A stretch of 64,000 nt of DNA from Isurus oxyrinchus (taxonomy: Eukaryota): NCBI GenBank assembly GCA_026770705.1, contig JANJGN010000121.1, positions 434,001 through 498,000 on the forward strand. Reading direction: 5' to 3'. A model generated the notes under the pieces. The model was given only the letters and a program-made list of their open reading frames with translations. It was not told where the DNA came from and did not search any database. Both the position numbers and the translations under genes were made by a program. Positions 5,621-63,159 of the stretch are shown piece by piece. Numbering within the stretch: position 1 is the first letter of the stretch; the number at the start of each line of letters is the position of its first letter.

Positions 5621-6623
5621 TTGGTGTTGTTATGTAGTGGAACTAGAGAGGTTATAGCAGTTATGAGAACATTAAGCAAACAGCAGCAAGAATTGAACAC
5701 CTACGTTGTGGTTTATGAAAAGGTTTTCAACCTGGTCAACTGGTAAAATCTGTTGAAAGTGGGCTATCATGGCGTGTGCCCTTTGGGAGATATTTGTAAC
5801 AACGTTCTCGATGTCGGAACAGCTTGCATTGAACAAATCTGATCTTTACCCAGAACTTCAGAGGAAGGGGGGACAATTGTTCCCTGGTGTGGGGGGCATG
5901 GTGGGGGGGGGGGAGGGTGAGGGAGAGACAAGTAGCCTGAAATACCAAGCCAGACACTTTGTGAAGACAAAAGTTGTTTATTCATTTTTTTTCACAAATC
6001 ATAATCTTTACAATTAAAGTCCCGACAAGATAATGGTGAATCATGAACACATTGTCGGGGTGAATCTGTGCCCGGGAGCATAAAGCAGCAAAATCAGGGG
6101 CCCGCTTTACATCTCTCTGAATTTTAACTATCATTAACCCCAGTAACATCCATTCAAATGACTTAGTCATAAGATTCCTCACACATTCACTTGCACACTC
6201 ACACACCCACACCCACACAGACACACTGACACACTCACTCATTCACATTGACACACACATATTGACAGTCACACACACACACACACACACACGCTCATAA
6301 AGACAGACACAAACACAGTCACGTGAGGTGAATAGTGTCGATGTATTTAAGGGGAAGCTGGATAAACACACGAGGGAGAAATGAATAGAAGGATATGGTG
6401 ATGGGGTGAGATGGAGAAGGGGTGGGCGGAGACTCGTGTGGAGCAGAAACTCCAGCATGGAACAGATGGGCCGAATGGCTTCTTTCCCTGCTGTAAAACG
6501 CAGGTAAAGTTTCAGTTGGAATTAATGAACAGGGCCTGTGTGAAATAGATTGCTAAGCAGTAGATAAGGAGGGGAGAGGCTGTGGCATGGTGCAGGATGA
6601 CCTTGCGTGAATGAGGCCAGGGT

Positions 6624-6740
6624 CTAATATCTACAGCAGAGACCACAAGTCTCATTTGGTTCTCTCCAATTACAGCAGTTACAGCAGAATCTGCAGAGCT
6701 GCTGTCTGCCCATTCTCTTCTGGCGCTGCAGCAAGGAGCC
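6624..6740 (-). CDS. HAMP: Hepcidin-like gene exon 3: furin site plus 8-Cys mature peptide
   Basis: Acceptor ctcctgcttttccag. Phase-0 translation GSLLQRQKR-MGRQQLCRFCCNCCNWREPNETCGLCCRY*. The C-x2-CC-x-CC-xn-CG-x-CC pattern after R-x-K-R is the hepcidin signature. Confidence 0.92.
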   Translation of the reverse strand, partial: GSLLQRQKRMGRQQLCRFCCNCCNWREPNETCGLCCRY

Positions 6741-7880
6741 CTGGAAAAGCAGGAGGACAATAGGTGAGAACATTCCGGAAAGAAAGAAGGCATCATTTCA
6801 ATCAGGCGCGTCATTGGAAGGAGGATGGCGCATTTCTATAGCGCCTTTCCCCTCCTCAGGATGGCCCAAAGTGTTCCACAGCTGAAGGAAGGACTTTTTC
6901 TGAAGTGGGCTCACCGCTGTAATGTAGGAAACGCAGCAGGCAATTCACGCACAGCAAGATCCCACAAACAGAAATGTGATAATGGCCCCGATTTTCAAAT
7001 TTTTACCAATGTCAGTTGAGGGATAAATGTTTGCCCCAGGAAAGCGGACATAACTGCATCCCATCCACCCCCCACCACCCCCTCCACACATACCCCCAAC
7101 TCCTGACGCACTTCATTTAAATTGTGGCCATGGAATCCTCTACATCCATCTGAGAGGGCAGATGTTGTCTCAGTTTAACATCTCATCTGAAAGACAGCGC
7201 CTTCAACAGTGCAGCACCCCCTCAGTACTGACCCTCCGACTGTGCAGCACTCCCTCAGTACTGACCGTCTGACAATGCAGCACCCCCTCAGTACTGACCC
7301 TCCGACTGTGCAGTCCCCCGCCGGTACTGACCCTCTGACAGTGCAGCACTCCCTCAGTACTGACCCTCTGACAGTGCAGCACCCCCTCAGTACTGACCCT
7401 CCGACTGTGCAGCACTCCCTCAGTACTGACCGTCTGACAATGCAGCACCCCCTCAGTACTGACCCTCCGACTGTGCAGTCCCCCGCCGGTACCGACCCTC
7501 TGACAATGCAGCACTCCAAGACTGACCGTCTGACAATGCAGCACCCCCTCAGTACTGACCCTCCGACTGTCCTGCCCCCCCGCCGGTACTGACCCTCCGA
7601 CAGCTCGGTAATTTCTCAATTACGCCTGGTGGTCCTTTTAACTCAGAGCTGAGAGTTGCAGAGAATCGAGCAGACACCCTGAACTGACACTTGCAGTGCA
7701 AGTACTGGGAGTGCGCTGGTCATTATCATGCTGCTGTCTGTGGGATCTTACAGTGCGCCAATGGCTGATTCTTTTCCCACAGTACATCAGTGACCTCACA
7801 TGAAAGAAAAAAAGCACTTGATTGTCTGCGAAACAGTTTGGGACGTCCTGATGTGTTGGAAGGCGCTAGAGAAATGCAAG

Positions 7881-8029
7881 AGTTGACGTTTCGAGTCCTC
7901 ATGACCCTTCTGAGGACTCGAAACGTCAACTCTTTTCTTCTCCGCCAATGCTGCCAGACCTGCTGAGTTTTTTCAGGTAATTCTGTTTTTGTTTTGGATT
8001 TCCAGCATCCGCAGTTTTCTTTGTTTTTA
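7881..8029 (+). mobile_element. Penelope-like terminal fragment with inverted 5' end and 14-bp TSD, in hepcidin intron 2
   Basis: tagagaaatgcaag is duplicated at 7867-7880 and 8030-8043. Perfect 24-bp inverted arms at 7878-7901/7911-7934. The body resembles the 3' end of the GIY-YIG element near 56540-56600. Confidence 0.7.
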
Positions 8030-9302
8030 TAGAGAAATGCAAGTCCTCTTTGTCTTTCACTCGATCCTCTAAGGTGTCTGTTGATTAACCAGCCTCTCGG
8101 TGTTTGATGTAGGCCTGGTTATAAACAGTTAGAAGGATCAAATATCAAAAGTGCTTTGGCTGACAGTCAAACCGATTGTGCATTCGGAGAGATTAGATAC
8201 GGTCTGCGCACAATGACTCCAGTCTCTGGCACTGACTGCCGCCTGGGGTCTCCCTTCCACATAACACTCACAACCTGCATTTACACAGCGCCTCTGACAT
8301 TGCAAAATGTCCCAGCCCACATTACCGGAGCGTAAATCAGAGAGAAGTCTAACACTGAGTCACATATGGAGATATTAGGGATAGGTGACCAAAAGCTTGG
8401 TCAAAGATGTCAGTTTTTAAGGAGCGTCTTAAAGGAGAGAGAGAGAGAGAGGCAGAGAGGTTAAGGGAGGGTATTCCGGAGCTCAGGGCCCCAGGCAGCT
8501 GAAGGCACGGCCACCAATGGTGGAGCGATGGGAATCAGGGGGACCCGGGAGATGCAGTAATGTCAGAGATTTTGGAGGAACATCGGGACCAGAGGAGGTG
8601 TTCTCCTGCTCCATATCTCTCTCTCTCTTCCTCTCATCCACTCCTCCTCTCCCTGTCTCTCTCTCCTACTCTTCCTCTCAATTGCCCTCTCTCCCAATCT
8701 TTCTCTCCTCTCTCCCTTTTCCTGTCTCTCTCCCTCTCTCTCTCCCTGTCTCCTTCTCCCACTCTGTATCTCTCCCTCTCTCTCACACTATTTTTGTAAC
8801 TTTCGCTCACTCTGTAACTCTCCCTTCCCTGTTAATTTCTCTCTCTTGGACAATCTCTCTTCCCTTTTCACTTTCCCTCACTCTGCATCTCTTTAATTTC
8901 TCCCTCTGTCACTCTCTCCCACCTATGTTCTTTCCCTTTCACCCCTCCCCGTCCCACTCTCTGTCTCTCTCTTCCAATCCCTCCCTCCCCCATTCCATCC
9001 CTCTCTCCGACTCTCGACTCCCAGCCTCTCTTTAACCCACTCCCAGGCTGGATCAGTCTCCCTCTCACTATTCCCGGCGTGGGTTACATTTAAAATTCCT
9101 GTGGGGATATGTTCACTTCCTTGGAATTGCCTCTTCCCAGCTTTGCAAAAAAAGTTGGGGGGGGCGGGGGGCTCGATTTCAAACCTGCCTCCTGAGTATA
9201 ACCGAGACAGACTGCCACTGAAATCAGCTTGAAATCAGAAAACTTTCTGTGGAAGAAACGAGCAGGGAGAAACCTTAAAATAAGGAATGAATTTCCACCT
9301 AC

Positions 9303-9359
9303 CGTGTCCGGGGAATCCACAGATTTCTCAATCGTCGAAGAACCTAAAGCAGTGTCAAC
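9303..9359 (-). CDS. HAMP: Hepcidin-like gene exon 2 (acidic pro-region)
   Basis: 57 nt, phase 0-0, acceptor ttctttctttttgcag, donor ACG|gtaggt. Encodes VDTALGSSTIEKSVDSPDT, in frame with exon 3. Confidence 0.8.
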
Positions 9360-10079
9360 CTGCAAAAAGAAAGAATTTATCAGGGAGAAAGTGAGAGGAG
9401 GATTGAGGGAGAGGGAGAGAGAGAGAGAGAGAGGTACAGGAGAGAGAGGGGGAGGAAGACAGACTTGCATTTCTCTAACGCCTTTCACCACATCCCAAAG
9501 CATTTCACAGCCACTGAAGGATGTTTTTGAAGTGCACTCACACTGTAGGAAATGTGGCAGCTGATTTGTGCACAGCAAGATCCCACAAATAGCAATGTGA
9601 TCATGGCCTAGATCATCTGTTTTTGGTGATGTTGGGTGAGGGATAAATATTGGTCCCAGGACACCGGGGAGAACTCCCCCTGCTCTTCCTCCAAATAGTG
9701 GCTGTGGGATCTTTCACACCCGCCCGAGAGGGCAGACGGGGGACTCGGTTTAATGTCTCATTCAACATTGTTGCGCTCCCTCAGTACTAACCCTTTGACA
9801 CTGCAGCACTCGCTTAGTATTAACCCTTCGATAGTGCTGCGCTCCCTCAGTACTGTCCCTCCGTCAGTGCAGCTCTATTTCAGTTCTAACCCTTCGACAC
9901 AGCAGCACTCCCTCAGTACTGACCTCCGACAGTATAGCACTCCCTCAGTACTGTCCCTCCAATAGTGCAACACTTCCACACTACTGACCCTCTGAGAGTG
10001 CAGCACTCCCTCAGCACGGAGCGTTGATCTACATTATGGGACTGAATTCCCTGGAGTGAGACTCAGACCAGTGATTTAG

Positions 10080-10970
10080 GTAGGGTTGTGGGGGCTGGAG
10101 GAGGTTACAGAGATAGGGAGGGCTGTAGAGGCTGTAGGAGCTTACAGAGAAAGGGAGGGTTGTAAGGGCTGTAGGAAGTTACAGAGATAGGGAGGGTTGT
10201 AGAGGCCGTAGGAGGTTACAGAGATGGGGGAGTTGTGGGGGCTGGAGGAGGTTACAGAGGTAGGGAGGTTTGTTGGGGCTGTAGGAGGTTAAAGAGATGG
10301 GGTGGTTGTGGGGGCTGGAGGAGGTTACAGATGTAGGGATGGTTGTAGAGGCTGGAGGAGGTTACCAAAATAGACACTGCTGTAGGGGCCACAGTAGGTT
10401 ACAGAGATAGGGAGAGTTATAGTGTGGAGAGGAGGTTTTCGAGTTCAGGAGGATTATAGGGGCTGGATGAGGTTACAGTGATTGTGAGGGTTGTGGGGCC
10501 TGGAGGATTTTACAGAGATAGGGAGGGTTGTAGGGTCTGGAGCAGGTTACAGAGATAGGGAGGGTTGTAGGGTCTGGAGCAGGTTACAGAGATAGGGAGG
10601 GTTGTAGGGTCTGGAGGAGGTTACAGTGATCGTGAGGGTTGTGGGGCCTGGGGGAGGTTACAGAGTTAGGGAGTGTTGTGGGGACTGTAGGAGGTTACAT
10701 AGATAGGGAGGGTTGTCGGGTCTGGAGGAGGTTACAGAGATAGGGAGGGTTAAAGGGACTGAAGGAGGTTACAGAGATAGGGAGGGTTGTAGAGACAGTA
10801 GGATGTTACAGAGATAGGGATTGTTGTAGGGGCTGGAGGATGTTACAGAGATAGGGAGGGTTGTAGGGGCTGGAGGAGGTTACAAAGATAGGGAGGGGTG
10901 TAGGAGCTGGAGGAGGTTACAGAGATAGGGAGGGTTGTAAGGCCTGGTGGAGGTTACAGAGATAGGGAGT
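10080..10970. repeat. 35-bp minisatellite (ggaggaggttacagagatagggagggttgtaggggct)
   Basis: Direct tandem repeats. Reverse-complement arrays at about 13630-13865, 50055-51390 and 55210-55400. Confidence 0.95.
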
Positions 10971-11146
10971 CGCTGAGGAGGGATTGAAAACAAGAATGAG
11001 AATTTCAGGGGAAATGACAGAAGGAAATGATGTTAAATTCTTAGAGGGCGACAATATTAAAGGCACGAACATAATAATATCAAACTGCGGAAGAGACCAG
11101 TCTATCTGGGTGGTAGACGTAGAGTCATGTGCAAGAAACACCTCAC

Positions 11147-11263
11147 CCAGAGGGACATCTCTTAGCTTAACCTCGACAAGGAGAAGAAGTGACTCAGCTG
11201 CAGGGAGAGCAGCAAAGTCAGAGTGAACAAGACAAGTCGCCATTTCATCTGGGAGCTTCCCAT
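11147..11263 (-). CDS. HAMP: Hepcidin-like gene exon 1 (signal peptide), with a lesion as assembled
   Basis: MGSSQMKWRLVLFTLTLLLSLQLSHFFSLSRLS*EMSLW|gtgagg. Hydrophobic signal peptide ~70 bp downstream of a TATA box. In-frame TAA at 11164-11162 precedes the phase-0 donor; alternatively AGG|TTAAGC at 11170 is a dead GTAAG donor. Confidence 0.75.
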
Positions 11264-11332
11264 CTCTGCCTGTCTCTTCTGATCTTCTGGCTCTGCTTTG
11301 ATGCTTTGGTTTGTAACTAGAGGAGCTTCCTG

Positions 11333-11546
11333 CTCTTATACCTGAAACACTTGAAGGGGACAGCCGCGGGTGGGTAGCTGTGTGGTATCACACCCATTTC
11401 TGGATATTGCAGTGTCGATGTTCCCTGTCCCACTGGCCTGGGACCAGCAGTAAGGTCACTGGGACATTGACTGTCTGGCGCCGAGAACTATCAGTCCCTC
11501 CGCAACGCCCTTCACCTTGTGCAAATATGTGTTCATATTGATGCAA
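11333..11546 (-). promoter_or_regulatory. Hepcidin-like promoter: TATA box, BMP-responsive element, C/EBP-type sites
   Basis: TATAAGAG at 11340-11333. GGCGCC at 11477-11482 abuts a Smad element (minus strand TCGGCGCCAGAC). TTGTGCAA at ~11517-11524 and TGATGCAA at ~11540-11547. Only a degenerate STAT-like TATCCAGAA at ~11398-11406. Confidence 0.6.
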
Positions 11547-23569: not shown

Positions 23570-25165
23570 TAGGCAGGTGGAGATTATTCCATCACACTCC
23601 TGACCTGTGCCTTGAGGTTGATGGACAGGCTTTGGGGAGTCAGGAGATGAGTTACTCACCACAGGATTCCCAGCCTCTGGCCTGCTCTTGTAGTCACAGT
23701 GTTTATATGGCTAGTCCAGTTCAGTTTCTGGTCAACGTTAACCCCCAGCGTGTTGAGAGTGGGGGATTCAGCAATGGTGATGCCATTGGACATTAATGGG
23801 AGATGGATATATTCTCTCTGGTTGGAGATGGTCATTGCCTGGCACTTGTGTGGCATGAATGTTACTTGCCACTTGTCAGGCCAAGCCTGGATATTGTCAA
23901 GGTCTTGCTGCATTTGGACATGGACTGCTTCAGCATCTGATGAGTCATGAATGATGTTGAACGTTGTGCAATCATCAGCGACCTTCCATAATTCTGACCA
24001 TCTGATAGAATGAATGTCATTGATGAAGCAGCTGAAGATGGTTGGGCCTAGGACACTACACTGAGCAACTCCTGCAGTGATATCCTGGAACTGAGATGAC
24101 TGACCTCCAACAACCACAACCACCTTCCTTTGTACTTGGTATGAATCCAATGAGTGGAGAGTTTTCCCTGTGACATGACATGGCAGATGATGTGTGCTTG
24201 GTGCTCCAAATCCACAAGGGAAAATTGGTCATGCTATCACAATAGTTTTGCAATTTGTATTTATTATAAGAAGCGTGCACTGAATTCAGGAGTAATGAGA
24301 TGACCACAACCTTTAGAGATTTTAAAAATTGGATTAAGATATTTATTAACAAAATAAAAGATTTCAAGCACAGACATAATACCACAGTTAGTTACAGCTA
24401 AAATATATTCTCAAATTCCTAATTAACCTGACTCCCAGTTACAGAGCCCGTTTAATGCAACAGTCGAAAATAAGATTTTAGATTAAAAACAAATCCAGTG
24501 AGTTAACACAGCACACACTTGACAGTGGAATTCTAAATGGATTTCTCCAACTTTATTTACTGAACATAACAGACTTATGCACAAATGCCTGGAGGCTTCT
24601 TCAAGCCTGTTTCACACACTCCTGTTAGATCTTACATGGCCCCAACATAGCCTTTCATTCTCCTTTATACATGTTTCTCTCTCTTTGATGTGTAAATTCT
24701 TTGGAACTGTACCTTTCCCATAATATAAACTTTCATGTTGCCAATATTGTCAATGAAGTTTGGGTAAAATTAAAAAAAACTCCTTAGCTTTGCTTATTGG
24801 GCTTGTCCTAAACAGACCAACATCCCTTTGAAATCAAAACAACCCCTTCACACCTTACATGTTAACACAGCCTCCATGTGTTCTCATTAGCATTTCAAGT
24901 ACATTTCTACATCTAGCTTCTTTTGATAATCTCAAGCTTGCAGTCTACCTGACTCCAGATGTAATTAAACCACACAGACAGATCCATCTACACTCACACT
25001 CATAAACCTACTTTAAAACAAACCAGGAAAATATTAAGCAAATTATTATACTTTCGTACCACCCCTGATTCCCATTGACTCCAGTTATGCTCGGGCTCCT
25101 AGATGCCACACTCGGTCAAATGCAGCCATGATGTCAAAGGCAGTCATTCTCGTCTCACCTTGTAT
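23570..25165 (-). mobile_element. CR1/L2-group LINE RT fragment with nested solo LTR
   Basis: ORF 23656-24150 GVAQCSVLGPTIFSCFIND...ADD...QQDLDNIQAW. Confidence 0.85.
24169..25061 (-). mobile_element. Solo LTR (Gypsy-like), related to 44080-44908 and 51475-52201
   Basis: TG...CA-bounded AT-rich insert interrupting the LINE. Shares 3' blocks (ctgaattca; ttttcccttgtggattt) with the other copies. Confidence 0.65.
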
Positions 25166-28234: not shown

Positions 28235-28440
28235 ATTAAAAGGGTTGTTCAGGACAGTTAGAGAGAGAAAGGTCGTCAAGTACGGAGATTGGAAACGAAG
28301 ACCTGACAGCCTTGTCCTCACAACCATTGAAGGAGAAACTGAGAGCAAAAACAGAAAGGGAGAGGAAAAATTGGGTGTGTGGATAACGTGGACTGAGCGA
28401 GGATTGAAGAAAACTGGATTAAAAACAACACGATCCCAAT
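28235..28440 (+). mobile_element. RTE-clade LINE 3' remnant (paralogous copy at 56603-56880)
   Basis: RERKVVKYGDWKRRPDSLVLTTIEG. The longer copy begins MLRISWMDRKTNEW, typical of the RTE C-terminus. Confidence 0.7.
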
Positions 28441-28481
28441 GGCTCCACGGAGACAACAAACAAATGTATCTCCACACTCAC

Positions 28482-28763
28482 ATTCCACAGTGATGGTTAT
28501 GAACCCCTCCACTGCTCCATGTTCATTCTCTGCCACACACTGATAGTCTCCAGTGTCCCTGGATGTAACGTGAGGAATCACCAACCACAGCTCATTGTTG
28601 GAACTTGTTCTGTTCATTGGGACATTAAGATGTCGCCACGTCAGGTTAGAAGCTGGGAAGCTCTCGACAGAGCAGATTATCATTGTAGAATTCCCCTCAA
28701 TTATATTGATCGATGAAGCGTTAATCATATCAAGAGAAGTAAATGAGAGATTCTGTGGAGCAT
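28482..28763 (-). CDS. Gene B tandem C2-set Ig exon, unit 8
   Basis: 282 nt, phase 1-1, DAPQNLSF...CSVESFPASNLTW...DTGDYQCVAENEHG...ITVE. Confidence 0.9.
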
Positions 28764-29453
28764 CTAAGAACAAATCAAGTGTTTAAAAGTGAGCAAGCAC
28801 AGTTTACAGCAAGACTCCATGCATCATCTCTCTGTATCTGATGTCTGTATGCATAGCCAGGTCCCTCCACTCCATATAACTTCCATTGTCAAATTTATAG
28901 TGGGCACTGCCTATGTAAACAGTCAAACTGCAGTTACATTCTCCCACCAGTAGAGGTGCTGTCCACCTAGAATGAAAGAAACTTTCACATCCTCAGGATA
29001 TACCCAAGGGCTTGACAGGCAATGATTGTATTTGATTGATGGAGCACTGAGGGGTAAATCTACAATTCTCTGTTCAGGAGGTTGCTCATCCAATTCAGGG
29101 TCTTGTTGATCTGGAGTTTACCTTCCTTCAACACAGAATCGGAGCTGATACCGAGACTCCAGTGCAGCACTGAGAGAGGACAGGGAACTCACACATGTGT
29201 TTGTGTTTGTGTGTTTTAGTGTGTTTGTGTTTCTGCACAAGAGAGTATGTTTATGTGTGCGTGTGTGTATGTGTTTGTGCATGTGTGCGTGTGCCTGTTT
29301 GTATACATCTGTGCATGAGTGAGTGTGTGCATGTGTATGTCTATGTGTGTGCACATGTGATTGTGTGTGTGAGTTGAGTGTGTGTGTGTTTCTGTGTATG
29401 TGTTTCAACATGCATCACTGTGTGTGTAAGTGTGCGTGTATGTGTCTACACAT

Positions 29454-29492
<39 letters not shown>

Positions 29493-29518
29493 TGATGTTG
29501 AAGTTTGCAGTAACTCAC

Positions 29519-29800
29519 GTTCCACAGTGATGGTTATGAACCCCTCCACTGCTCCATGTTCATTCTCTGCCACACACTGATAGTCTCCAGTGTCCCTGGA
29601 TGTAACGTGAGGAATCACCAACCACAGCTCATTGTTGGAACTTGTTCTGTTCATTGGGACATTAAGATGTCGCCACGTCAGGTTAGAAGCTGGGAAGCTC
29701 TCGACAGAGCAGATTATCACTGCAGCATTCCCCTCAATTATCTTGATCGATGAAGCGTTAATCATATCAAGAGAAGTAATTGATGGGTTCCGTGGTGCAT
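29519..29800 (-). CDS. Gene B tandem C2-set Ig exon, unit 7
   Basis: 282 nt, AG/GT intact, open frame. Confidence 0.9.
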
Positions 29801-30786
29801 CTAAATACAAATAAAGGTTTCATTGTGAGCAAACACAGTGCACAGCAAGACTCCATGATACATCTCTCTCTATTTGGTGTCTATGTGCATTTCAAGGTTT
29901 CTTTCCTGTTTTAAGTTCCTATGTCAACTTTTATAATGGTCACTGCCAGCGTTTTTCTTTTTGTACATTCATGGGAAGTGGATGTATCTATCTAGACCAG
30001 CATTTATTACCCATCCCTAATTGCCCTTGAGGAGGTGGTGGTGAGTTTTTCACCGCCACAGAATTCCCAGCCTCTGACCGGCTCCTATAGCCACAGTTTT
30101 ATTGACCGGTCCAGTTAGTTGTTTGGTTAACACCCCCCAGGATGTTGATCGTGGGGGATTCAGTGATAGTAAACTCACTGAACATCAAGGGGAGATGGTT
30201 AGATTCTCTCTTGTTGGACATGTTCACTGCCTGGTACTTGTGATGCATTAATTCTCATTTCTCAGCCCAAGCTGAGTGTTATTCAGCTCTTGCTGCATGT
30301 GGATATGTAAACTGTCACGCTGTAATTACAGCCTTCCACCAGAGGAGACACTGTTGGGCTAGAAGAAAAGAAAATGTCTTTCACATCATCAGGAGGTTCA
30401 CAGGGATTTGACAGTGGAGGAATTGCTTTAGAATAATGGGGTATTGAGTGATAAACCTACAATTCTCTGTGCAGGGGGCTGCTCGTCCAATACAGGGTCT
30501 TGTTCAGCTGATGTCGTCAGTGTTTCAGAGCAGAATCTGGAGCAACACTCCAGTGCAGCACAGGGAGAAGAGACAACTCACACATGTCTGTGTGTGTGTG
30601 AGCAAGCACACGTGTGATTCTGTGTATGTTTCCTTCTGTGTGTGTGAGCATGCAGGTGTACACACCTGTGCACATGTGGGATTGCACATGAATGCTTGTT
30701 TGTGTGCACGTGTCTGTGTGTGTGTGTGTATGTGTGTGTGTGTGTGTGTGTATGTGAGAGTAATGTTGAAGTTTGTGTTAACTCAC

Positions 30787-31068
30787 GTTCCACAGTGATG
30801 GTTAGGAACTCCTCCACTGCTCCATGTTCATTCTCTGCCACACACTGATCGTCTCCAGTGTCCCTGGATGTAACGTGAGGAATCACCAACCACAGCTCAT
30901 TGTTGGAACCTGTTCTGTTCATTGGGACATTAAGATGTCGCCACGTCAGGTTAGAAGCTGGGAAGCTCTCGACAGAGCAGATTATCTCTGCAGAATTCCG
31001 CTCAATTATATTGATCGATGAAGCATTAATCATATCAAGAGAATTAATTGAGAGATTCAGTGGAGCAT
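30787..31068 (-). CDS. Gene B tandem C2-set Ig exon, unit 6 (DTGDDQC variant)
   Basis: 282 nt, open; Tyr-corner Y replaced by D. Confidence 0.88.
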
Positions 31069-31776
31069 CTAAAAACAAATAAAGATTTTAATGTGAGCAA
31101 GCAGCGTGCACAGCAAGACTCCATGCATCATCTCTCTGTATCTGATGTCTGTATGCATTTCCAGATACCTTCCCTCCATATAACTTCCACTGTCAAATTT
31201 ATAATGGGCACTGCCTATGTAAACAGTCAAACTACAGTTACATTCTCCCACCAGTAGAGGCGCTGTCCACCTAGAATGAAAGAAACTTCCTTGCACATCC
31301 TCAGGATTTTGCCAAGGGCTTGACAGGCAATGAATTGCATTTGATCGATGGAGCTCTGAGGGGCAAACCTACAATTCTCTGTTCAGGAGGTTGCTCCATC
31401 CAATTCAGGATCTTGTTGATCTGGAGTTTACCTTCCTTCAACACAGAATCGGAGCTGATACCAAGACTCCAGTGCAGCCCTGAGAGAGGAGAGGGACCTC
31501 ATGCGTGCGTATGTGTGTGTTTGTGTTTCTGCACAAGTGAGTGTGTTTGTGTGTGTATGCACGCATGTGTCTGTGTGTGCGTGTGTGTATGTGTTTTGCA
31601 TATGTTTGTGTGTCTTTGTGTATACGTCTGTGCATGAGTGAACGTGAGTGCATGTGTATGTCTATATGTGTGCCTGTGTGAGTGTGTGCGTGTGAGTTGA
31701 GTGTATGTGTGTTTCTGTGTATGTTTTTGCACGTGTATGACTGTGTGTGTAAATGTGCACGTATGTGTCTACACAT

Positions 31777-31833
<57 letters not shown>

Positions 31834-31876
31834 TGTGTGCGTGTGTGAGAGAGATGTTGAGTTGGCATTAACTCAC

Positions 31877-32158
31877 GTTCCACAGTGATGGTTATGAACC
31901 CCTCCACTGCTCCATGTTCATTCTCTGCCACACACTGATAGTCTCCAGTGTCCCTGGATGTAACGTGAGGAATCACCAACCACAGCTCATTGTTGGAACT
32001 TGTTCTGTTCATTGGGACATTAAGATGTCGCCACGTCAGGTTAGAAGCTGGGAAGCTCTCGACAGAGCAGATTATCACTGCAGAATTCCCCTCAATTATA
32101 TTGATCGATGAAGCGTTAATCATATCAAGAGAATTAATTGAGAGATTCAATGGTGCAT
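31877..32158 (-). CDS. Gene B tandem C2-set Ig exon, unit 5
   Basis: 282 nt, AG/GT intact, open frame. Confidence 0.9.
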
Positions 32159-32846
32159 CTATATATATATAGAAAGATTTTAACGTGAGCAACAGAGTGC
32201 ACAAGACTCCATGCATCATATCTCTGTATCTGATATCTGAATGCATTTCCAGGTAACTTCCCTCAGGATAAGGTCTTATGGCACATTTATAATTGACACT
32301 GCCTATGTAAACTGTCACACTGCAATTGCATTCTCCCACCAGCAGAGGTGTTGCCCATCTAGAATGAAAGAAGTTTGCTTTCACATCCTCAGGATTTCGC
32401 AAAGGGCTGGACAGGCAATTAATTGTATTTGATCGATGGAGCACTGAGGGGTAAATCTACCATTCTCTGTTCAGGATTTTGCTCATCCAATTCAGGGTCT
32501 TGTTGATCTGGAGTTTACCTTCCTTCAACACAGAATCGGAACTCATACTAAGACTCCAGTGCAGCACTGAGAGAGGACAGGGAACTCACGCGTGTGTATG
32601 TGTGTGTTTGTGTTACTGCACATGTGAGTGTGTTTGTGTGTGTATGCACACATGTATCTGTGTGTGTGCATGCGCGTGTGTCTGTGTGTCTACGTCTGTC
32701 CATGAGTCAGAGTATGTGCATGTGTGTGTCTATGTGTGGGCATGAATATGTGTGTGTTTGAGATGGGTGTGTATTTTCCTGTGTATGTGTTTGTACGTGT
32801 ATGACTGTGTGTGTATAATTATGCATGTGTGTGCTTACACACGTGT

Positions 32847-32887
<41 letters not shown>

Positions 32888-32945
32888 TGTGTGTGTGTGT
32901 GTGTGTGCGTGCGTGTGAGTGATGTTGAAGTTTGCGTTAACTCAC

Positions 32946-33227
32946 ATTCCACAGTGATGGTTATGAACCCCTCCACTGCTCCATGTTCATTCTCTGCCAC
33001 ACACTGATAGTCTCCAGTGTCCCTGGATGTAACGTGAGGAATCACCAACCACAGCTCATTGTTGGAACTTGTTCTGTTCATTGGGACATTAAGATGTCGC
33101 CACGTCAGGTTAGAAGCTGGGAAGCTCTCGACAGAGCAGATTATCACTGCAGAATTCTCCTCAATTATATTGATCGATGAAGCGTTAATCATATCAAGAG
33201 AATGAATTGAGAGATTCTGTGGGGCAT
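32946..33227 (-). CDS. Gene B tandem C2-set Ig exon, unit 4
   Basis: 282 nt, AG/GT intact, open frame. Confidence 0.9.
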
Positions 33228-33976
33228 CTAAAAACAAATAAAGATTTTAATGTGAGCAAGCAGCATGCACAGCAAGACTCCATGCATCATCTCTCTGTAT
33301 CTGATGTTGGAATGCATTTCCAGGTACCTTCCCTCAGGAAAAAATACTGTCACATTTATAATGGGCACTTCCTATGTAAACTGTCACACTGCAGTTGCAT
33401 TCTCCCACCAGCAGAGTTGCTGTCCACCTAGAATGAAACAAACATCCTTTAACACTCTCAAGATGCCCCCAAGGGATTGAAAGCCCGTGAATTGTATTTG
33501 ATCGATGGAGCACTGAGGGGTAAATCTACAATTCACTGTTCAGGAGGTTGCTCCATCCAATTCAGGGTCTTGCTGATCTGGAGTTTACCTTCCTTCAACA
33601 CAGAATCAGAGCTGATACCAAGACTCCAGTGCAGCACTGAGAGAGGAGAGGGAGCTCACACTTGTGTGTGTGTGTGTGTATTTCTGCACAAGTGAGTTTG
33701 TATTTGTGTGTATGCGCGTGTTTGTCTGCGCATGTGTGGGCACGCGTGTGTATGTGGGTCTTGTGTGTATATCTGTGCTTGAGTGAGTGTGTGTGTATAC
33801 GTGTGTCTACGTGTGCGCATGAATGATTGTACGTGTGAGTTGAGTTTGTGTGTGTTTCTGTGTATGTGTTTGAACGTATGTTTGTGTGTAAGCGTGCATG
33901 TTTGTGTCTACACATGAGTGTTTTTGCATGTGTGTCTGTGTTTGTGTGTGTGATGTTGAAGTCTGTGTGCACTCAC

Positions 33977-34258
33977 ATTCCACAGTGATGGTTATGAATC
34001 CCTCCACTGCTCCATGTTCATTCTCTGCCACACACAGATAGTCTCCAGTGTCCCTGGATGTAACGTGAGGAATCACCAACCACAGCTCATTGTTGGAACT
34101 TGTTCTGTTCATTGGGACATTAAGATGTCGCCACGTCAGGTTAGAAGATGGGAAGCTCTCGACAGAGCAGATTATCACTGCAGAATTCCCCTCAATTATA
34201 TTGATCGATGAAGCATTAATCATTTCAAGCGAAGTAAATGTGAGATCCTGTGGTGCAT
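33977..34258 (-). CDS. Gene B tandem C2-set Ig exon, unit 3
   Basis: 282 nt, AG/GT intact, open frame. Confidence 0.9.
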
Positions 34259-34847
34259 CTAAAAACAAATCAAGTGTTTAATGTGAGCAAGCTCAATTTA
34301 CAGCAAGACTCCATGCATCATCTCTCTGTAACTGATGTCTGTATGCAATTCCGGGTACCTTCCCTCCTTATAACTTCCACTGTCAAATTTATAATGGACA
34401 CTGCCTATGTAAACAGTCAAACTGCAGTTACATTCTCCCACCAGTAGAGGTGCTGTTCACCTAGAATGAAAGAAACTTTCACATCCTCAGGATTTTGCCA
34501 AGGGATTTACGGGAATGAATTGTATTTGATCGATGGAGTACTGAGGAGTAAATCTACAATTCTCTGTTGCTCATCCAATTCAGGGTCTTGCTGATCTGGA
34601 GTTTACCTTCCTTCAACACAGAATCAGAGCTGATACCAAGACTCCAGTGCGGCACTGAGAGAGGAGAGGGACCTCATGTGTGTGTATGTGTTTGTGTTTA
34701 TGTTTCTGCACAAGTGAGTGTGTTTGTGTGAGTATGCACGCATGCGTCTGTGTGTGCGTGTGTGTGTGTTTGCGCATATGTGAGTGTGTCTTTGTGTATA
34801 TTTCTGTGCATGAGTGAATGTGTGTGTATGTTTATGAGTATGTGTGT

Positions 34848-34880
<33 letters not shown>

Positions 34881-34904
34881 ATGTTGAAGTTTGCAGTAAC
34901 TCAC

Positions 34905-35186
34905 ATTCCACAGTGATGGTTATGAACCCCTCCACTGCTCCATGTTCATTCTCTGCCACACACTGATAGTCTCCAGTGTCCCTGGATGTCACGTGAGGAA
35001 TCACCAACCACAGCTCATTGTTGGAATTTGTTCCGTTCATTGGGACATTAAGATGTCGCCACGTCAGGTTAGAAGCTGGGAAGCTCTCGACAGAGCAGAT
35101 TATCACTGCAGAATTCCCCTCAATTACATCAATCGATAAAGCGTTAATCACACCAAGAGAAGTAATTGAGAGATTCCGTGGTGCAT
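34905..35186 (-). CDS. Gene B tandem C2-set Ig exon, unit 2
   Basis: 282 nt, AG/GT intact, open frame. Confidence 0.9.
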
Positions 35187-35786
35187 CTATAAACACAGAA
35201 AGATTTTAATATGAGCAAATATAGTGCACAGTAAGACTCCATGCATCATGTCTCTGTGTCTGATGTCTGAATGCATTTCCAGGTACATTCCCTCAGGATA
35301 AGAACTTATTTCACATTTACAACGGGCACTGCCTATGTAAACTGTCACACTGCAGTTACATTCTCCCACCAGTGGAGGTGTCCATCTAGAATGCAGGAAA
35401 CTCCCTTTCAGATCCTCAGGATGTCCGCAAGGGCTTCAAAGGCAATGAATTGTATTTGATCGATGGAGCACTGAGGGGTAAATCTACAATTCACTGTTCA
35501 GGAGGTTGCTCCATGCAGTTCAGTGTCTTGATGATCTGGAGTTTACCTTCCTTCAGCACAGATTCGGAGCTGATACTGAGATTCCAGTGCAGCACTGGGA
35601 GAGGAGAAGGAACCCACATGTTTTTGTGTGTGTATGTGTGTGTTGGCTTGTGTGTGTATGTTTCTGTAAAATAAGGATCTGTGTGTGTGCACGCACTCAT
35701 GTGTGTTTGTGTGTGTGTGCGCACATGTGTCTGTCTATGCATGTGTGTGTGTGTGCTTGTGTGAGTTGAGATTGTGTATGTTTCTG

Positions 35787-35828
<42 letters not shown>

Positions 35829-35858
35829 GGAGTGATGTTGAAGTTTGCATTAACTCAC

Positions 35859-35951
35859 ATTCCACAGTGATGGTTATGAACCCCTCAATTATATTGATCG
35901 ATGAAGCATTAATCATATCAAGCGAAGTAAATGAGAGATTCTGTGGTGCAT
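35859..35951 (-). CDS. Gene B C2 unit 1, internally deleted in frame (93 nt)
   Basis: DAPQNLSFTSLDMINASSINIIEG/FITITVE: 189 nt missing, both splice sites kept. Confidence 0.75.
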
Positions 35952-36170
35952 CTAAGAACAATTAAAGATTTCATTGTGAACAAGACTCAGTACTGAGGGA
36001 GTGCTGCAGTGTTGGAGAATCAGTATTCAGGGACTGCTGCAGTGTCAGAGGTGAATTTGTATCAGTTAAAGACTATTGATTTGTTGCTAAACACAATGCA
36101 GTTGTGGGATCTTGCAATGTACTATGTAGAGCTTTCTAGCTAATGTAGAATGAAGGGTGTCCATTCTTAC

Positions 36171-36467
36171 CTTGCACAGTTAGTATGAGGGTCCGCTCCG
36201 ATGAAACAGATGGATATCTCACTCTGCAGCTGAGTGTGTGTCCGTGGTGTTTGAGTGATGGGATGAGGGTCAGAACAGAAGTATAGGTCAGAGTGACACC
36301 ATGCTGAGTTACAGTGTTTGAGACTGATCCAGGTACGTCAGTGGGAGTGTCCCAGGTTAAGACAGGTGCTGCTGTTCCATTGCACGTTGTGTTGAAGGTG
36401 CAGCTTACATCCACACGCTTTCCTGCAATAATTTCAGCAGGGAATATCGTGGGTTTATCTGTGAAAT
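36171..36467 (-). CDS. Gene B domain 2 (Siglec-type C2-set)
   Basis: 297 nt, DFTDKPTI...SCTFNTTCNGTAAPVLTW...HHGHTLSCRVRYP; has the extra Cys typical of the Siglec D1-D2 disulfide. Confidence 0.92.
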
Positions 36468-36719
36468 CTAACAGACAGAAAATGGATCCTTTTAGAGAAA
36501 TATAATGTGAAGCATCAGTTCAAATAGAAATCACAGTCCCACAAGAGAAAGCACTTTTACAAGGATGATATCAGAACTGAGAGGTTACAATGATCAGGAA
36601 AGATTTTCTTGCTCTTTGGCAGTAGTGTTTCTGTCTCTCAGCTTAATACACGTTCACTCCGAGACATGTGAATTGAGAATACTGGATGAGAGAAGAGGCT
36701 CAGACCAGAGATTGGAGTT

Positions 36720-36851
36720 AAAAGCAGAATACTGCGGATGCTGGAAATCTGAAACCAAAACAAAAATTGCTGGAAAGACTCAGCAGGTCTGACAGTATCA
36801 GTGGAGAGGAAGACAGGGTTAACGTTTCGAGTCCGTATGACTCTTCATCAG
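36720..36851 (-). mobile_element. Penelope-like terminal fragment with hammerhead-ribozyme core
   Basis: Minus strand CTGATGA-AGAGTC-ATACG-GACTC-GAAAC-GTT at 36851-36821. Confidence 0.6.
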
Positions 36852-37327
36852 ACCAGAGGTTTGAGTTCACTGGCTTCTCATTTCCTCAGTGATCTGGGTG
36901 ATTTATCACCTTGTGGTTTGTTGGATCTTGCTGTGCACAAACTGCCTGCTGTGTTTAACATCTGTGACCACAATTCAGGAATAATTTCATTGGCTGTGAA
37001 GGGATTTGGATCCTCCTGAGGTGGTAAATTGCGCTGCAGAAATGCACATCTTTCTTTTATCGATACGTCAGACTTTTAAACAGGACAGGAGAGATTGATG
37101 GGAGTGGATAACCTGATAATACAGTTAATGCTTTTCATCATTGATATTAAAGTAATTATTAGAGGTTGCTTTAGGACTGAACTGGAAGCTATCAGCAGGT
37201 TATGGAGAATGAAGACAATGTGTTATAATAACCTGTGTTTTGTGTTAATATGTAAACGTCACAGTTTGTGTTATTTCCCATTGAGTGTTGAATGTGAATT
37301 GTTGAGTAATTATAACACAGCACTTAC

Positions 37328-37693
37328 CAGAAACGTGAAGCTGGGTTACAGGATAGTAGCTGTAACTATTCCTGCTGTCAAATTCTATTCTGAAAAAATA
37401 AGGTCCCGCATCTTCCCGTCTGATGTTATTTATAATCAGAGAACAGTCACCATCTTTCAGGTCTCCAGACAGCCGGGTCCGATGGTGGAACCGTGGTAAC
37501 TCGTGACTGTGATCCTTGGAGTGAAAGGCTATAGACGATGTTCTCCATTCCTCATTATTAAACCAGACTCCAACTCGTGGTTGGTTTTCCAAATGTGATG
37601 GATAACTGTAATGACAGGGAATCTGTACACAGGAACCTTCCTGCGCTGTCACCTCTCGTGGAGTGTCACCTTTCCACTCTTGTTACAGTCCAA
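37328..37693 (-). CDS. Gene B sialic-acid-binding V-set exon (premature stop near 5' end)
   Basis: VGL*QEWKGDTP...SCVQIPC...W...GDCSLIINNIRREDAGPYFFRIE. Siglec Cys pattern, no F-strand Cys, essential Arg in FRIE. Confidence 0.9.
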
Positions 37694-61914: not shown

Positions 61915-62726
61915 CTAACACACAGAGAATGGATCCTTTTAGAGAAATATAACATGAAGCATCAGTTCAAATAGAAAGCACAGTCCCACAAGAGAAAGCA
62001 CTTTTACAAGGATGATATCAGAACTGAGAGATTACAACGATCAGGAGAGAATTTCCTATTTTCAGACTTAGTGGAGTTTCTGTCTCTCAGATGAATTCAC
62101 TTCCACTTCGAGACAATTGAATTGACAATCCCGGGTGAGGGTGGGGGAGCAGCTCACAGTTCCTGACACACTGGCTTGTTACTTTCTCCGAAATCTGCCA
62201 GATTTAAATTCTATCCTGTTCCCAGCAGGAGAGAATCCATTTGAACCAATCACTGAACCGGCATCTAAAACAGATGATCAGGTTATTGATCACATTGCTG
62301 TTTGTGGGAGCTTCCTGTGAACAAATTGGCTGCTGTGTTTCCCATATTACAACAAGGGTTACATTTCAAGAATTATTTCAATGGTTGTGAATCCATGTGC
62401 AACGTACAGAGGTGGTGAAAGGCGCTATAGAAATACAAATCTTTCTTTTGCTCATATGTAAGAATTTTAAACAGGATTAGGGAGATTGATGTAAGTGGAT
62501 AACGTGATAACATTGATGGACACAGTCAATACATTTAATCACTGATATTAAAGTGAGTATTAGAGGTTGTTTTAGGACTGAACTGGAAGCTATCACCAGG
62601 TTATTGAGAATCAGACAGTGTGTTATAATAAACTGTGTTTGTGTTAATATGTAAATGTCACAGTTTGTGTTATTTCCCATTGAGTGTTGGATGTGAATTG
62701 TTGAGTAATTATAACACAGCACTTAC

Positions 62727-63095
62727 CAGAAACGTGAAGCTGGGTTACAGGGTAATAGTTATGGCTCGGACCATTGTCAAATTCTATTCTGAAAAAATAA
62801 GGTCCTGCATCTTCCCGTCTGATGTTGTTTATAATCAGGGAACAGTCGCCATCTTTCAGGTCTCCAGACAGCCGGGTCCGATGGTGGAACCGTGGTAACT
62901 CGTGACTGTGATCCTTGGAGTGAAAGACAATGGGAGCCCAGGGAATATGTTTCTCATTATGAAACCAGACTCCACCTCGCGGTTGGTTTTCCAGACACGA
63001 TGGATAACTGTAATGACATGGAATCTGTACACAGGAACCTTCCTGCGCTGTCACCTCTCGTGGAGTGTCACCTTTCCACTCTTGTGAGGGTTCAG
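62727..63095 (-). CDS. Gene C sialic-acid-binding V-set exon (intact); leader exon outside the window
   Basis: AEPSQEWKGDTP...SCVQIPC...GDCSL...DAGPYFFRIEFDNGPSHNYYPVTQLHVS|gtaagt. Confidence 0.93.
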
Positions 63096-63159
63096 CTGGG
63101 GAGAGAAATATCAATATTTAACTCTGAATGGTTTGTGGATCCAATAGACTTAAAATTTA

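Follow-up and report, generated by a model that had tools for sequence, protein, structure and literature searches.

A probable lineage-specific long-loop hepcidin paralogue in a MAG-CD22 neighbourhood of a shark genome

The segment described here represents exon 3 in a hepcidin-family gene made up of three exons, situated in a conserved hepcidin/Siglec neighbourhood of a cartilaginous-fish-like genome. The reading that I favour, as a probable though by no means secure one, is that of a lineage-specific hepcidin paralogue with an enlarged hairpin loop in a MAG-CD22 neighbourhood, most likely with a role other than that of the iron hormone, whose copy in the window (the whole 64-kb stretch of DNA analysed in this study) is probably dead or null. 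The hepcidins of cartilaginous fishes are almost undescribed; the literature on shark hepcidin yielded only a passing mention, in a study of nurse shark plasma, and a search of the full-text literature for the peptide string found no paper. Hepcidin and the site at which it binds ferroportin are believed to have arisen jointly in early jawed vertebrates (PMC8235187).

On the minus strand, 6624-6758 translates into ...LLQRQKR, followed by a 29-residue peptide and a stop codon, and the plus-strand frame at the coordinates of the peptide gives an unrelated translation. The features of the mature peptide and its immediate surroundings are the following.

6627..6713, minus strand: predicted mature peptide of 29 residues with 8 Cys (translation, Pfam Hepcidin, alignment to PDB hepcidins)
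6624..6626, minus strand: stop codon after the mature peptide (translation)
6714..6725, minus strand: RQKR propeptide-convertase site, of the form RX(K/R)R (sequence)
6648..6671, minus strand: enlarged hairpin loop NWREPNET, from Cys14 to Cys23 (HMMER alignments)
6648..6656, minus strand: N-E-T sequon, residues 20-22, adjoining Cys23 (sequence)

The peptide begins with M-G-R-Q-Q-L-C, which leaves six residues before the first Cys, and its cysteines occupy positions 7, 10, 11, 13, 14, 23, 26 and 27, with the conserved Gly24 after the sixth Cys. Between Cys14 and Cys23 lie the eight residues NWREPNET. Arg occurs four times and Glu twice, and the only N-X-T sequon, eight residues from the C-terminus, has its Asn at residue 20. 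The nominal charge is +2, with a computed pI of 8.2. The convertase site conforms to the RX(K/R)R motif as described (PMC8960508), and a minimal R-X-X-R site, RMGR, overlaps RQKR three residues downstream; a second cleavage at this site might possibly give a 26-residue form starting with Q-Q-L-C. With four disulfides, the computed mass is 3483.0 Da for the 29-mer and 3138.6 Da for the 26-mer. The original prediction, which had been made from the bare sequence, described a 29-residue peptide with eight cysteines, an eight-residue loop containing N-E-T, 4 Arg and 2 Glu, and all of this is read in the minus-strand translation letter by letter, with the Pfam match as additional evidence for the peptide.

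The Pfam Hepcidin family (PF06446) is matched with 31.3 bits and an E-value of 2.6e-07, above the curated cut-off of 27, and in this match 34 query residues are set against profile positions 23-52, 30 of the 53 in the profile. The cysteine pattern of the family, C-x2-CC-x-CC-loop-C-x2-CC, is present with a loop of 8 residues instead of 4-5. When PDB chains were searched with phmmer, the alignments to bass hepcidin (1S6W) and to human hepcidin (1M4F) each had a four-residue gap falling exactly within the loop, so that the comparison of loop length with vertebrate hepcidins, which had been proposed as a check, gives four extra residues with respect to these two chains. The core CRFCCNCC is identical to that of bass hepcidin, and the CG-x-CCR end aligns with the bass and the human chains. 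Within the loop, P-N-E-T aligns with bass P-N-M-S-G, which makes N-W-R-E, immediately behind the fifth Cys, the best candidate for the inserted residues. The loop had been called doubled, which holds in comparison with human hepcidin (4 residues) and fails in comparison with fish hepcidins, whose loop has 5 residues and is exceeded by 3.

The N-terminus was compared with the part of human hepcidin that contacts ferroportin, where the epitope comprises the first nine residues, with His3, Phe4, Ile6 and Phe9 as the bioactive patch (PMC7915682). At the aligned positions the shark peptide carries R3, Q4, L6 and F9, with Cys7 retained as well, which bears out the suggestion that His3 and Phe4 had been lost from the ferroportin-binding patch. 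The motif QSHL/DTHFP, which marks the iron-regulatory class of hepcidins (PMC8960508, PMC7915682) and provides His3 together with a hydrophobic position 4, is absent from the long-loop peptide. With the iron-hormone class, i.e. human HAMP (hepcidin-25) and teleost HAMP1 (QSHLSLC), the gene nevertheless shares the Pfam family, the three-exon structure, the signal peptide, the pro-region, the RX(K/R)R site, the C-x2-CC-x-CC ... C-x2-CC framework with its CG-x-CC end, the six residues before the first Cys, a hydrophobic position 6, Phe9 and the neighbourhood with MAG/CD22-type genes. It differs from this class in the missing His3, and with it the X-X-H metal motif, in the missing hydrophobic position 4 and in the 8-residue loop instead of one of 4-5 residues, and its mature peptide, at 29 residues, exceeds the 19-27 that have been reported (PMC8960508).

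Teleost HAMP2, represented by bass hepcidin (1S6W), is similar in other respects. It has the same CRFCCNCC core and the same CG-x-CCR-aromatic end, and it likewise lacks QSHL/DTHFP, is multi-copy and occurs beside a canonical type; a low positive charge (in some of its peptides) and an N-x-S/T-like sequon in the loop are found there too. However, HAMP2 peptides have short N-termini and a loop of 5 residues, whereas the shark peptide has a full-length N-terminus and a loop of 8. As HAMP2 has been reported only in acanthopterygian teleosts (PMC8960508), the long-loop gene of the shark would be an independent duplication and not an orthologue.

Transcription was followed in four public runs of Logan contigs, two from organism A (X1 and X2) and two from organism B (X5 and X6). 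All four are labelled RNA by guess only, and contigs cannot assign transcripts to a gene copy; still, intron-less GT..AG joints at the very high depth of X1 identify that material as cDNA. The gene model that follows from these contigs is given below.

11334..11340, minus strand: TATAAGA, resembling a TATA box, some 70 nt upstream of the ATG (sequence; its function is presumed)
11263-11261, minus strand: start ATG in good context, with A at -3 and G at +4 (sequence)
11171..11263, minus strand: coding part of exon 1, 31 residues with a hydrophobic signal-peptide core (RNA register; high depth in bin 11172-11345 of X1)
9360..11170, minus strand: intron 1 according to the RNA contigs, with non-canonical ends in the window copy, TT..AG or, after a shift of one base, GT..CA
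9303..9359, minus strand: exon 2, 57 nt, pro-region VDTALGSSTIEKSVDSPDT in the RNA register (RNA contigs, sequence)
6741..9302, minus strand: intron 2, GT..AG, with a 33-bp tandem array and interspersed repeats (RNA joint)
6624..6740, minus strand: coding part of exon 3, with a 3'UTR that continues below 6300 (acceptor AG just upstream of 6740; RNA joint)

The joint 6739->9302, when shifted one base to the right, leaves CT..AC, i.e. GT..AG on the minus strand, and is present in nine contigs of X1 and one of X2. The joint 9359->11171 is likewise found in nine X1 contigs, with one base that fits on either side. A spliced contig of 444 nt (record 10 of X2) covers 6345-6739 and 49 nt of exon 2 with 2 mismatches, and thus the whole mature-peptide region. 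The word depth in X1 is 3.5-8 x 10^5 over exon 3 and the 3'UTR, 1.6 x 10^5 and 2.9 x 10^5 in the bins of exon 2 and exon 1, respectively, against about 10^3 in most intron bins outside repeats. As seen in the RNA, the precursor comprises 31 residues from exon 1 (11263-11171), 19 from exon 2 (9359-9303) and 38 from exon 3 (6740-6627), i.e. 93+57+114 coding nucleotides or 88 codons, within the range of 81-96 residues reported for hepcidin prepropeptides (PMC8960508). The transcripts thus have the three-exon prepropeptide layout, with RQKR and two joints of the GT..AG type, whereas the copy in the window has a defective donor at exon 1.

No variant with a sizeable share of the depth is listed within the mature-peptide codons (6627-6713), compared with a variant of 22% at position 6481, from which it follows that the dominant transcripts encode exactly this peptide. 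From minor variants of the joints, no fewer than three additional expressed versions of the sequence can be recognised, none of which departs from the register; the in-between letters CC, CG and CA correspond to V>G at the first codon of exon 2, a synonymous AGG>CGG and R>W. The intron contigs of X1 differ by 0-2% from the window, which fits transcription mainly from near-identical paralogues, and the very strong transcription of the long-loop form presumably comes from such other copies. A blastn comparison of the three exon regions with the window returned self-matches only. Contigs from X5 and X6, which look like DNA, cover 6517-6945 (exon 3 and the intron boundary) at about 95% identity, and a relative, organism B, therefore holds a similar gene.

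A second type of hepcidin is transcribed in the same run. One X1 contig aligns from 6711 upward, the start of exon 3, and continues into 38 unaligned bases, of which the 30 that are shown read, when reverse-complemented, AGC CAC CTC TCG ATC TGC ATG TAC TGC TGT. In the frame that follows ...KRM, this gives S-H-L-S-I-C-M-Y-C-C, in which the N-terminus has six residues, position 3 is His, and positions 4 and 6 are hydrophobic, a match to the QSHL/DTHFP motif of the iron-regulatory class (PMC8960508, PMC7915682). Although it is one contig only, it indicates that a canonical, His3-bearing hepcidin is transcribed too, which makes the long-loop form a paralogue; the gene of the S-H-L-S-I-C type lies outside the window. 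Whether all chondrichthyan hepcidins share the loop and the N-terminus had been raised as a check on novelty, and within this animal the N-terminus is not common to all hepcidins, which fits a derived paralogue with a role other than that of the iron hormone. In the 5' part of exon 3, the canonical and the long-loop types are identical at 90% of the nucleotides or more, as would fit a duplication within the shark lineage and not orthology with teleost HAMP2. This suggests that the long-loop gene may be an analogue of HAMP2, not a member of it by descent.

The gene had been treated as a working one, and in this respect the prediction fails for the copy in the window, as the in-frame splice of the RNA is incompatible with its exon 1 donor as assembled. 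The lesion is located as follows.

11170..11172, minus strand: lesion site at the exon 1 donor, GAGG·TTAAG in the window as opposed to GAGG|GT as required by the RNA

The transcripts read ...TCGAGG-GTTGAC... across the junction. On the minus strand, 11176-11165 reads ...TCGAGG TTAAGC..., and the exon 2 acceptor in the window copy reads ...TTTTTGCAG|GTTGAC..., so that the window copy would need a TT..AG or a GT..CA intron; no GT-AG pair that gives the RNA junction was found in it. The canonical GT at 11171-11170 together with the AG at 9361-9360 yields one base fewer and reads ...SLS-R-LTLL-stop, with the stop in exon 2, and canonical splicing of the window copy is thus predicted to give a frameshifted product of 35 residues. 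Two histories would fit these letters: the expressed copies may have GAGG|GTAAGC, a near-consensus donor, with the first base of the intron changed from G to T in the window, or they may have GAGG|GTTAAG, with the loss of one G in the window copy. Two ways to rescue the copy were considered and discarded. A downstream donor, CTCTGG|GTGAGG near 11147, is out because the RNA joints put the donor at 11171/11172, upstream of an in-frame TAA, and the ATG at 11243, which would share the frame of exon 2 if the canonical sites were used, provides no signal peptide.

The copy in the window is therefore probably dead or null, unless the base at 11170/11171 is an assembly error. The latter would make the locus an intact gene with an erroneous base call, and one strongly expressed source of the peptide, which I consider somewhat unlikely, although several observations would be accommodated by it: the listed exon positions match the dominant transcripts except for the junction base (at 6481, the T of the window is the more frequent letter), the intron contig 7087-7231 matches the window perfectly, and the promoter, the context of the ATG, the acceptors and the remaining open reading frame are all intact. 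However, GAGG·TTAAG is unambiguous in the window sequence, and most intron contigs are 1-2% away from the window copy. That the segment would be a chance open reading frame or non-coding sequence, and not a hepcidin at all, is almost certainly wrong and can be regarded as already refuted by the Pfam score above the cut-off, the deep spliced transcripts and the 8-Cys pattern, of which the six-frame translation of the window holds a single instance, where about 1.5e-05 would be expected by chance. All that speaks for it is that the large-database searches returned no homologues. Among 1.8 billion proteins, for which the 38-residue exon 3 query is too short to reach significance, the protein representatives gave one match, a translated simple repeat of 577 residues; the best score in the ESM Atlas, 0.76 to a plant cluster, is uninformative; and the homologue word search with the 49-residue exon 3 ORF and residues 18-57 of a 57-residue reference produced no candidate sharing three words, a blank that is uninformative with such short queries.

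With regard to the favoured reading of a long-loop paralogue, the precursor would consist of a signal peptide, a short pro-region, the RQKR convertase site and the 29-residue peptide. By homology with human hepcidin, in which the disulfides are Cys7-23, 10-13, 11-19 and 14-22 (PMC7915682), the peptide is expected to fold as a disulfide-laddered hairpin with Cys7-Cys27, Cys10-Cys13, Cys11-Cys23 and Cys14-Cys26, where N15-T22 would form an enlarged tip through the four extra residues and E-P-N-E would be a likely turn. The structure prediction that had been proposed for the peptide was carried out with AlphaFold2 and gave a helical model instead of a hairpin (mean pLDDT 71, pTM 0.38), and such single-sequence models are unreliable for small disulfide-rich peptides. 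With His3 and Phe4 of the ferroportin patch lost, a role as iron hormone is unlikely for the long-loop peptide, and weak or no activity on ferroportin would be expected; it may instead serve host defence or another role, as teleost HAMP2 does. For a peptide that acts on membranes, the net charge of +2 is low, and a HAMP2-type peptide with similar values, +2 and a pI of 8.23, has been published (PMC8960508).

Alternatively, the long-loop peptide could still regulate iron as a hormone, or serve as a partial agonist, with a shark ferroportin that has co-evolved as its target. The very high depth is as expected of a liver hepcidin, and the retained six-residue spacing, L6, C7, F9 and aromatic C-terminus make some ferroportin activity conceivable; moreover, the ferroportin of cartilaginous fish has the equivalent of C326, and some of these fish have a second ferroportin (PMC8235187). 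Nonetheless, I hold this to be unlikely, as Arg and Gln stand in place of His3 and Phe4, whose role is established for the human peptide (PMC7915682), the run that contains the long-loop transcripts contains the canonical S-H-L-S-I-C type as well, and second hepcidin genes of fish reportedly take no part in iron regulation (PMC8235187). A different proposal concerns the N-E-T sequon: Asn20 would be N-glycosylated, and the glycan would provide a new receptor interaction, for instance with the neighbouring Siglecs. The sequon is a valid one at the tip of the enlarged loop, STT3B, which prefers NXT, glycosylates sites within 50-55 residues of the C-terminus (PMC3613688), and MagT1 aids sites close to cysteines (PMC4137057). 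At only eight residues from the C-terminus and with a disulfide Cys adjacent, however, the site combines the conditions of low occupancy; such sites need post-translocational STT3B and MagT1 and are often used incompletely (PMC3613688, PMC4137057). Neither is the sequon a special feature, as had been supposed, since bass hepcidin carries N-M-S at the aligned position of its loop, and a sequon in a loop of eight residues has a chance expectation of a few percent. The natural bass hepcidin was reportedly isolated unglycosylated, at the mass of the unmodified peptide. In addition, the proximity of Siglec genes is accounted for by ancestral synteny (in part PMC4453067), as set out below, and the glycan and Siglec ideas, quite improbable to begin with, thus find no support here. 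The most far-reaching proposal, a shark-amplified hepcidin class with an enlarged and possibly glycosylated tip, a remodelled N-terminus and a target other than ferroportin, be it a receptor, a lectin/Siglec or a microbe, seems to me very improbable; if true, a hepcidin of a new class would be among the most abundant liver transcripts.

The genes near the hepcidin were identified from Pfam matches, and the relevant features of the window are these.

28318..37652, minus strand: CD22/Siglec-like gene (Pfam matches)
37245-37652, minus strand: V-set/Ig_CD22 exon of this gene (Pfam)
36136-36414, minus strand: C2-set exon of this gene (Pfam)
28318-35196, minus strand: seven near-identical Ig_3 C2 exons of this gene (Pfam)
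62644-63114, minus strand: second V-set/Ig_CD22 exon, near the end of the window (Pfam)

The CD22/Siglec-like exons are on the same strand as the hepcidin gene, and the arrangement agrees with a HAMP-region neighbourhood. CD22 is adjacent in the mammalian HAMP/MAG locus. HAMP in mammals is found at a locus shared with USF2 and FFAR2, with MAG near FFAR2 (PMC4453067); no USF2 was seen in the 64-kb window. As the neighbourhood is conserved, the adjacency of the Siglecs is inherited synteny, which supports the orthology of the locus and not a functional link. The connection between the peptide and the Siglecs that had been suggested thus dissolves into the conserved HAMP-MAG-CD22 neighbourhood. 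A Pfam search with 17 further large open reading frames of the window gave no family; one window ORF had a Usg-like match below the cut-off. Weak fragments of RVT_1 (25.8 bits) and of an integrase core (16.6 bits), at 23656-24150 and 58848-59195 and below the Pfam cut-offs, are probably decayed retroelements, judging from these matches.

If true, a shark duplicate with a changed N-terminus and a larger loop, next to a canonical type, would constitute a second, independent split between hormone and defence peptide, comparable to that of HAMP1 and HAMP2 in teleosts. The hairpin tip would also be seen to tolerate an insertion of four residues, which could be useful for the engineering of hepcidins. 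For genome annotation, these observations mean that ORF-based tracks miss such genes, that the genes are multi-copy, and that some copies, including the one in the window, look defective. Hepcidin is known to circulate in the plasma of the nurse shark from a proteome study, in which no whale-shark orthologue was found, an example of shark hepcidin genes being missed by annotation (PMC9207270).

Some minor observations concern the introns and the 3' end of the gene. The joints 6739->7959 and 8113->9302, both GT..AG on the minus strand and each present in one X1 contig, suggest a minor isoform with a cassette exon of about 154 nt (7960-8113) in intron 2, which overlaps a highly repeated element (7866-8039). 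Tandem arrays of 33 bp belonging to the same unit family are present in both introns, at 7206-7603 (12 copies) and 9776-10014 (7 copies), and their very high contig depth in all four runs identifies them as a genome-wide repeat. A 37-bp satellite with 24 copies and 81% matches occupies 10077-10969 in intron 1, just downstream of exon 1, and gives rise to periodic pseudo-ORFs of 34 residues. At the other end of the gene, a (CA)n-rich microsatellite lies at 6194-6317, and the 3'UTR reaches at least 6300, the depth being still very high in the 6300-6473 bin.
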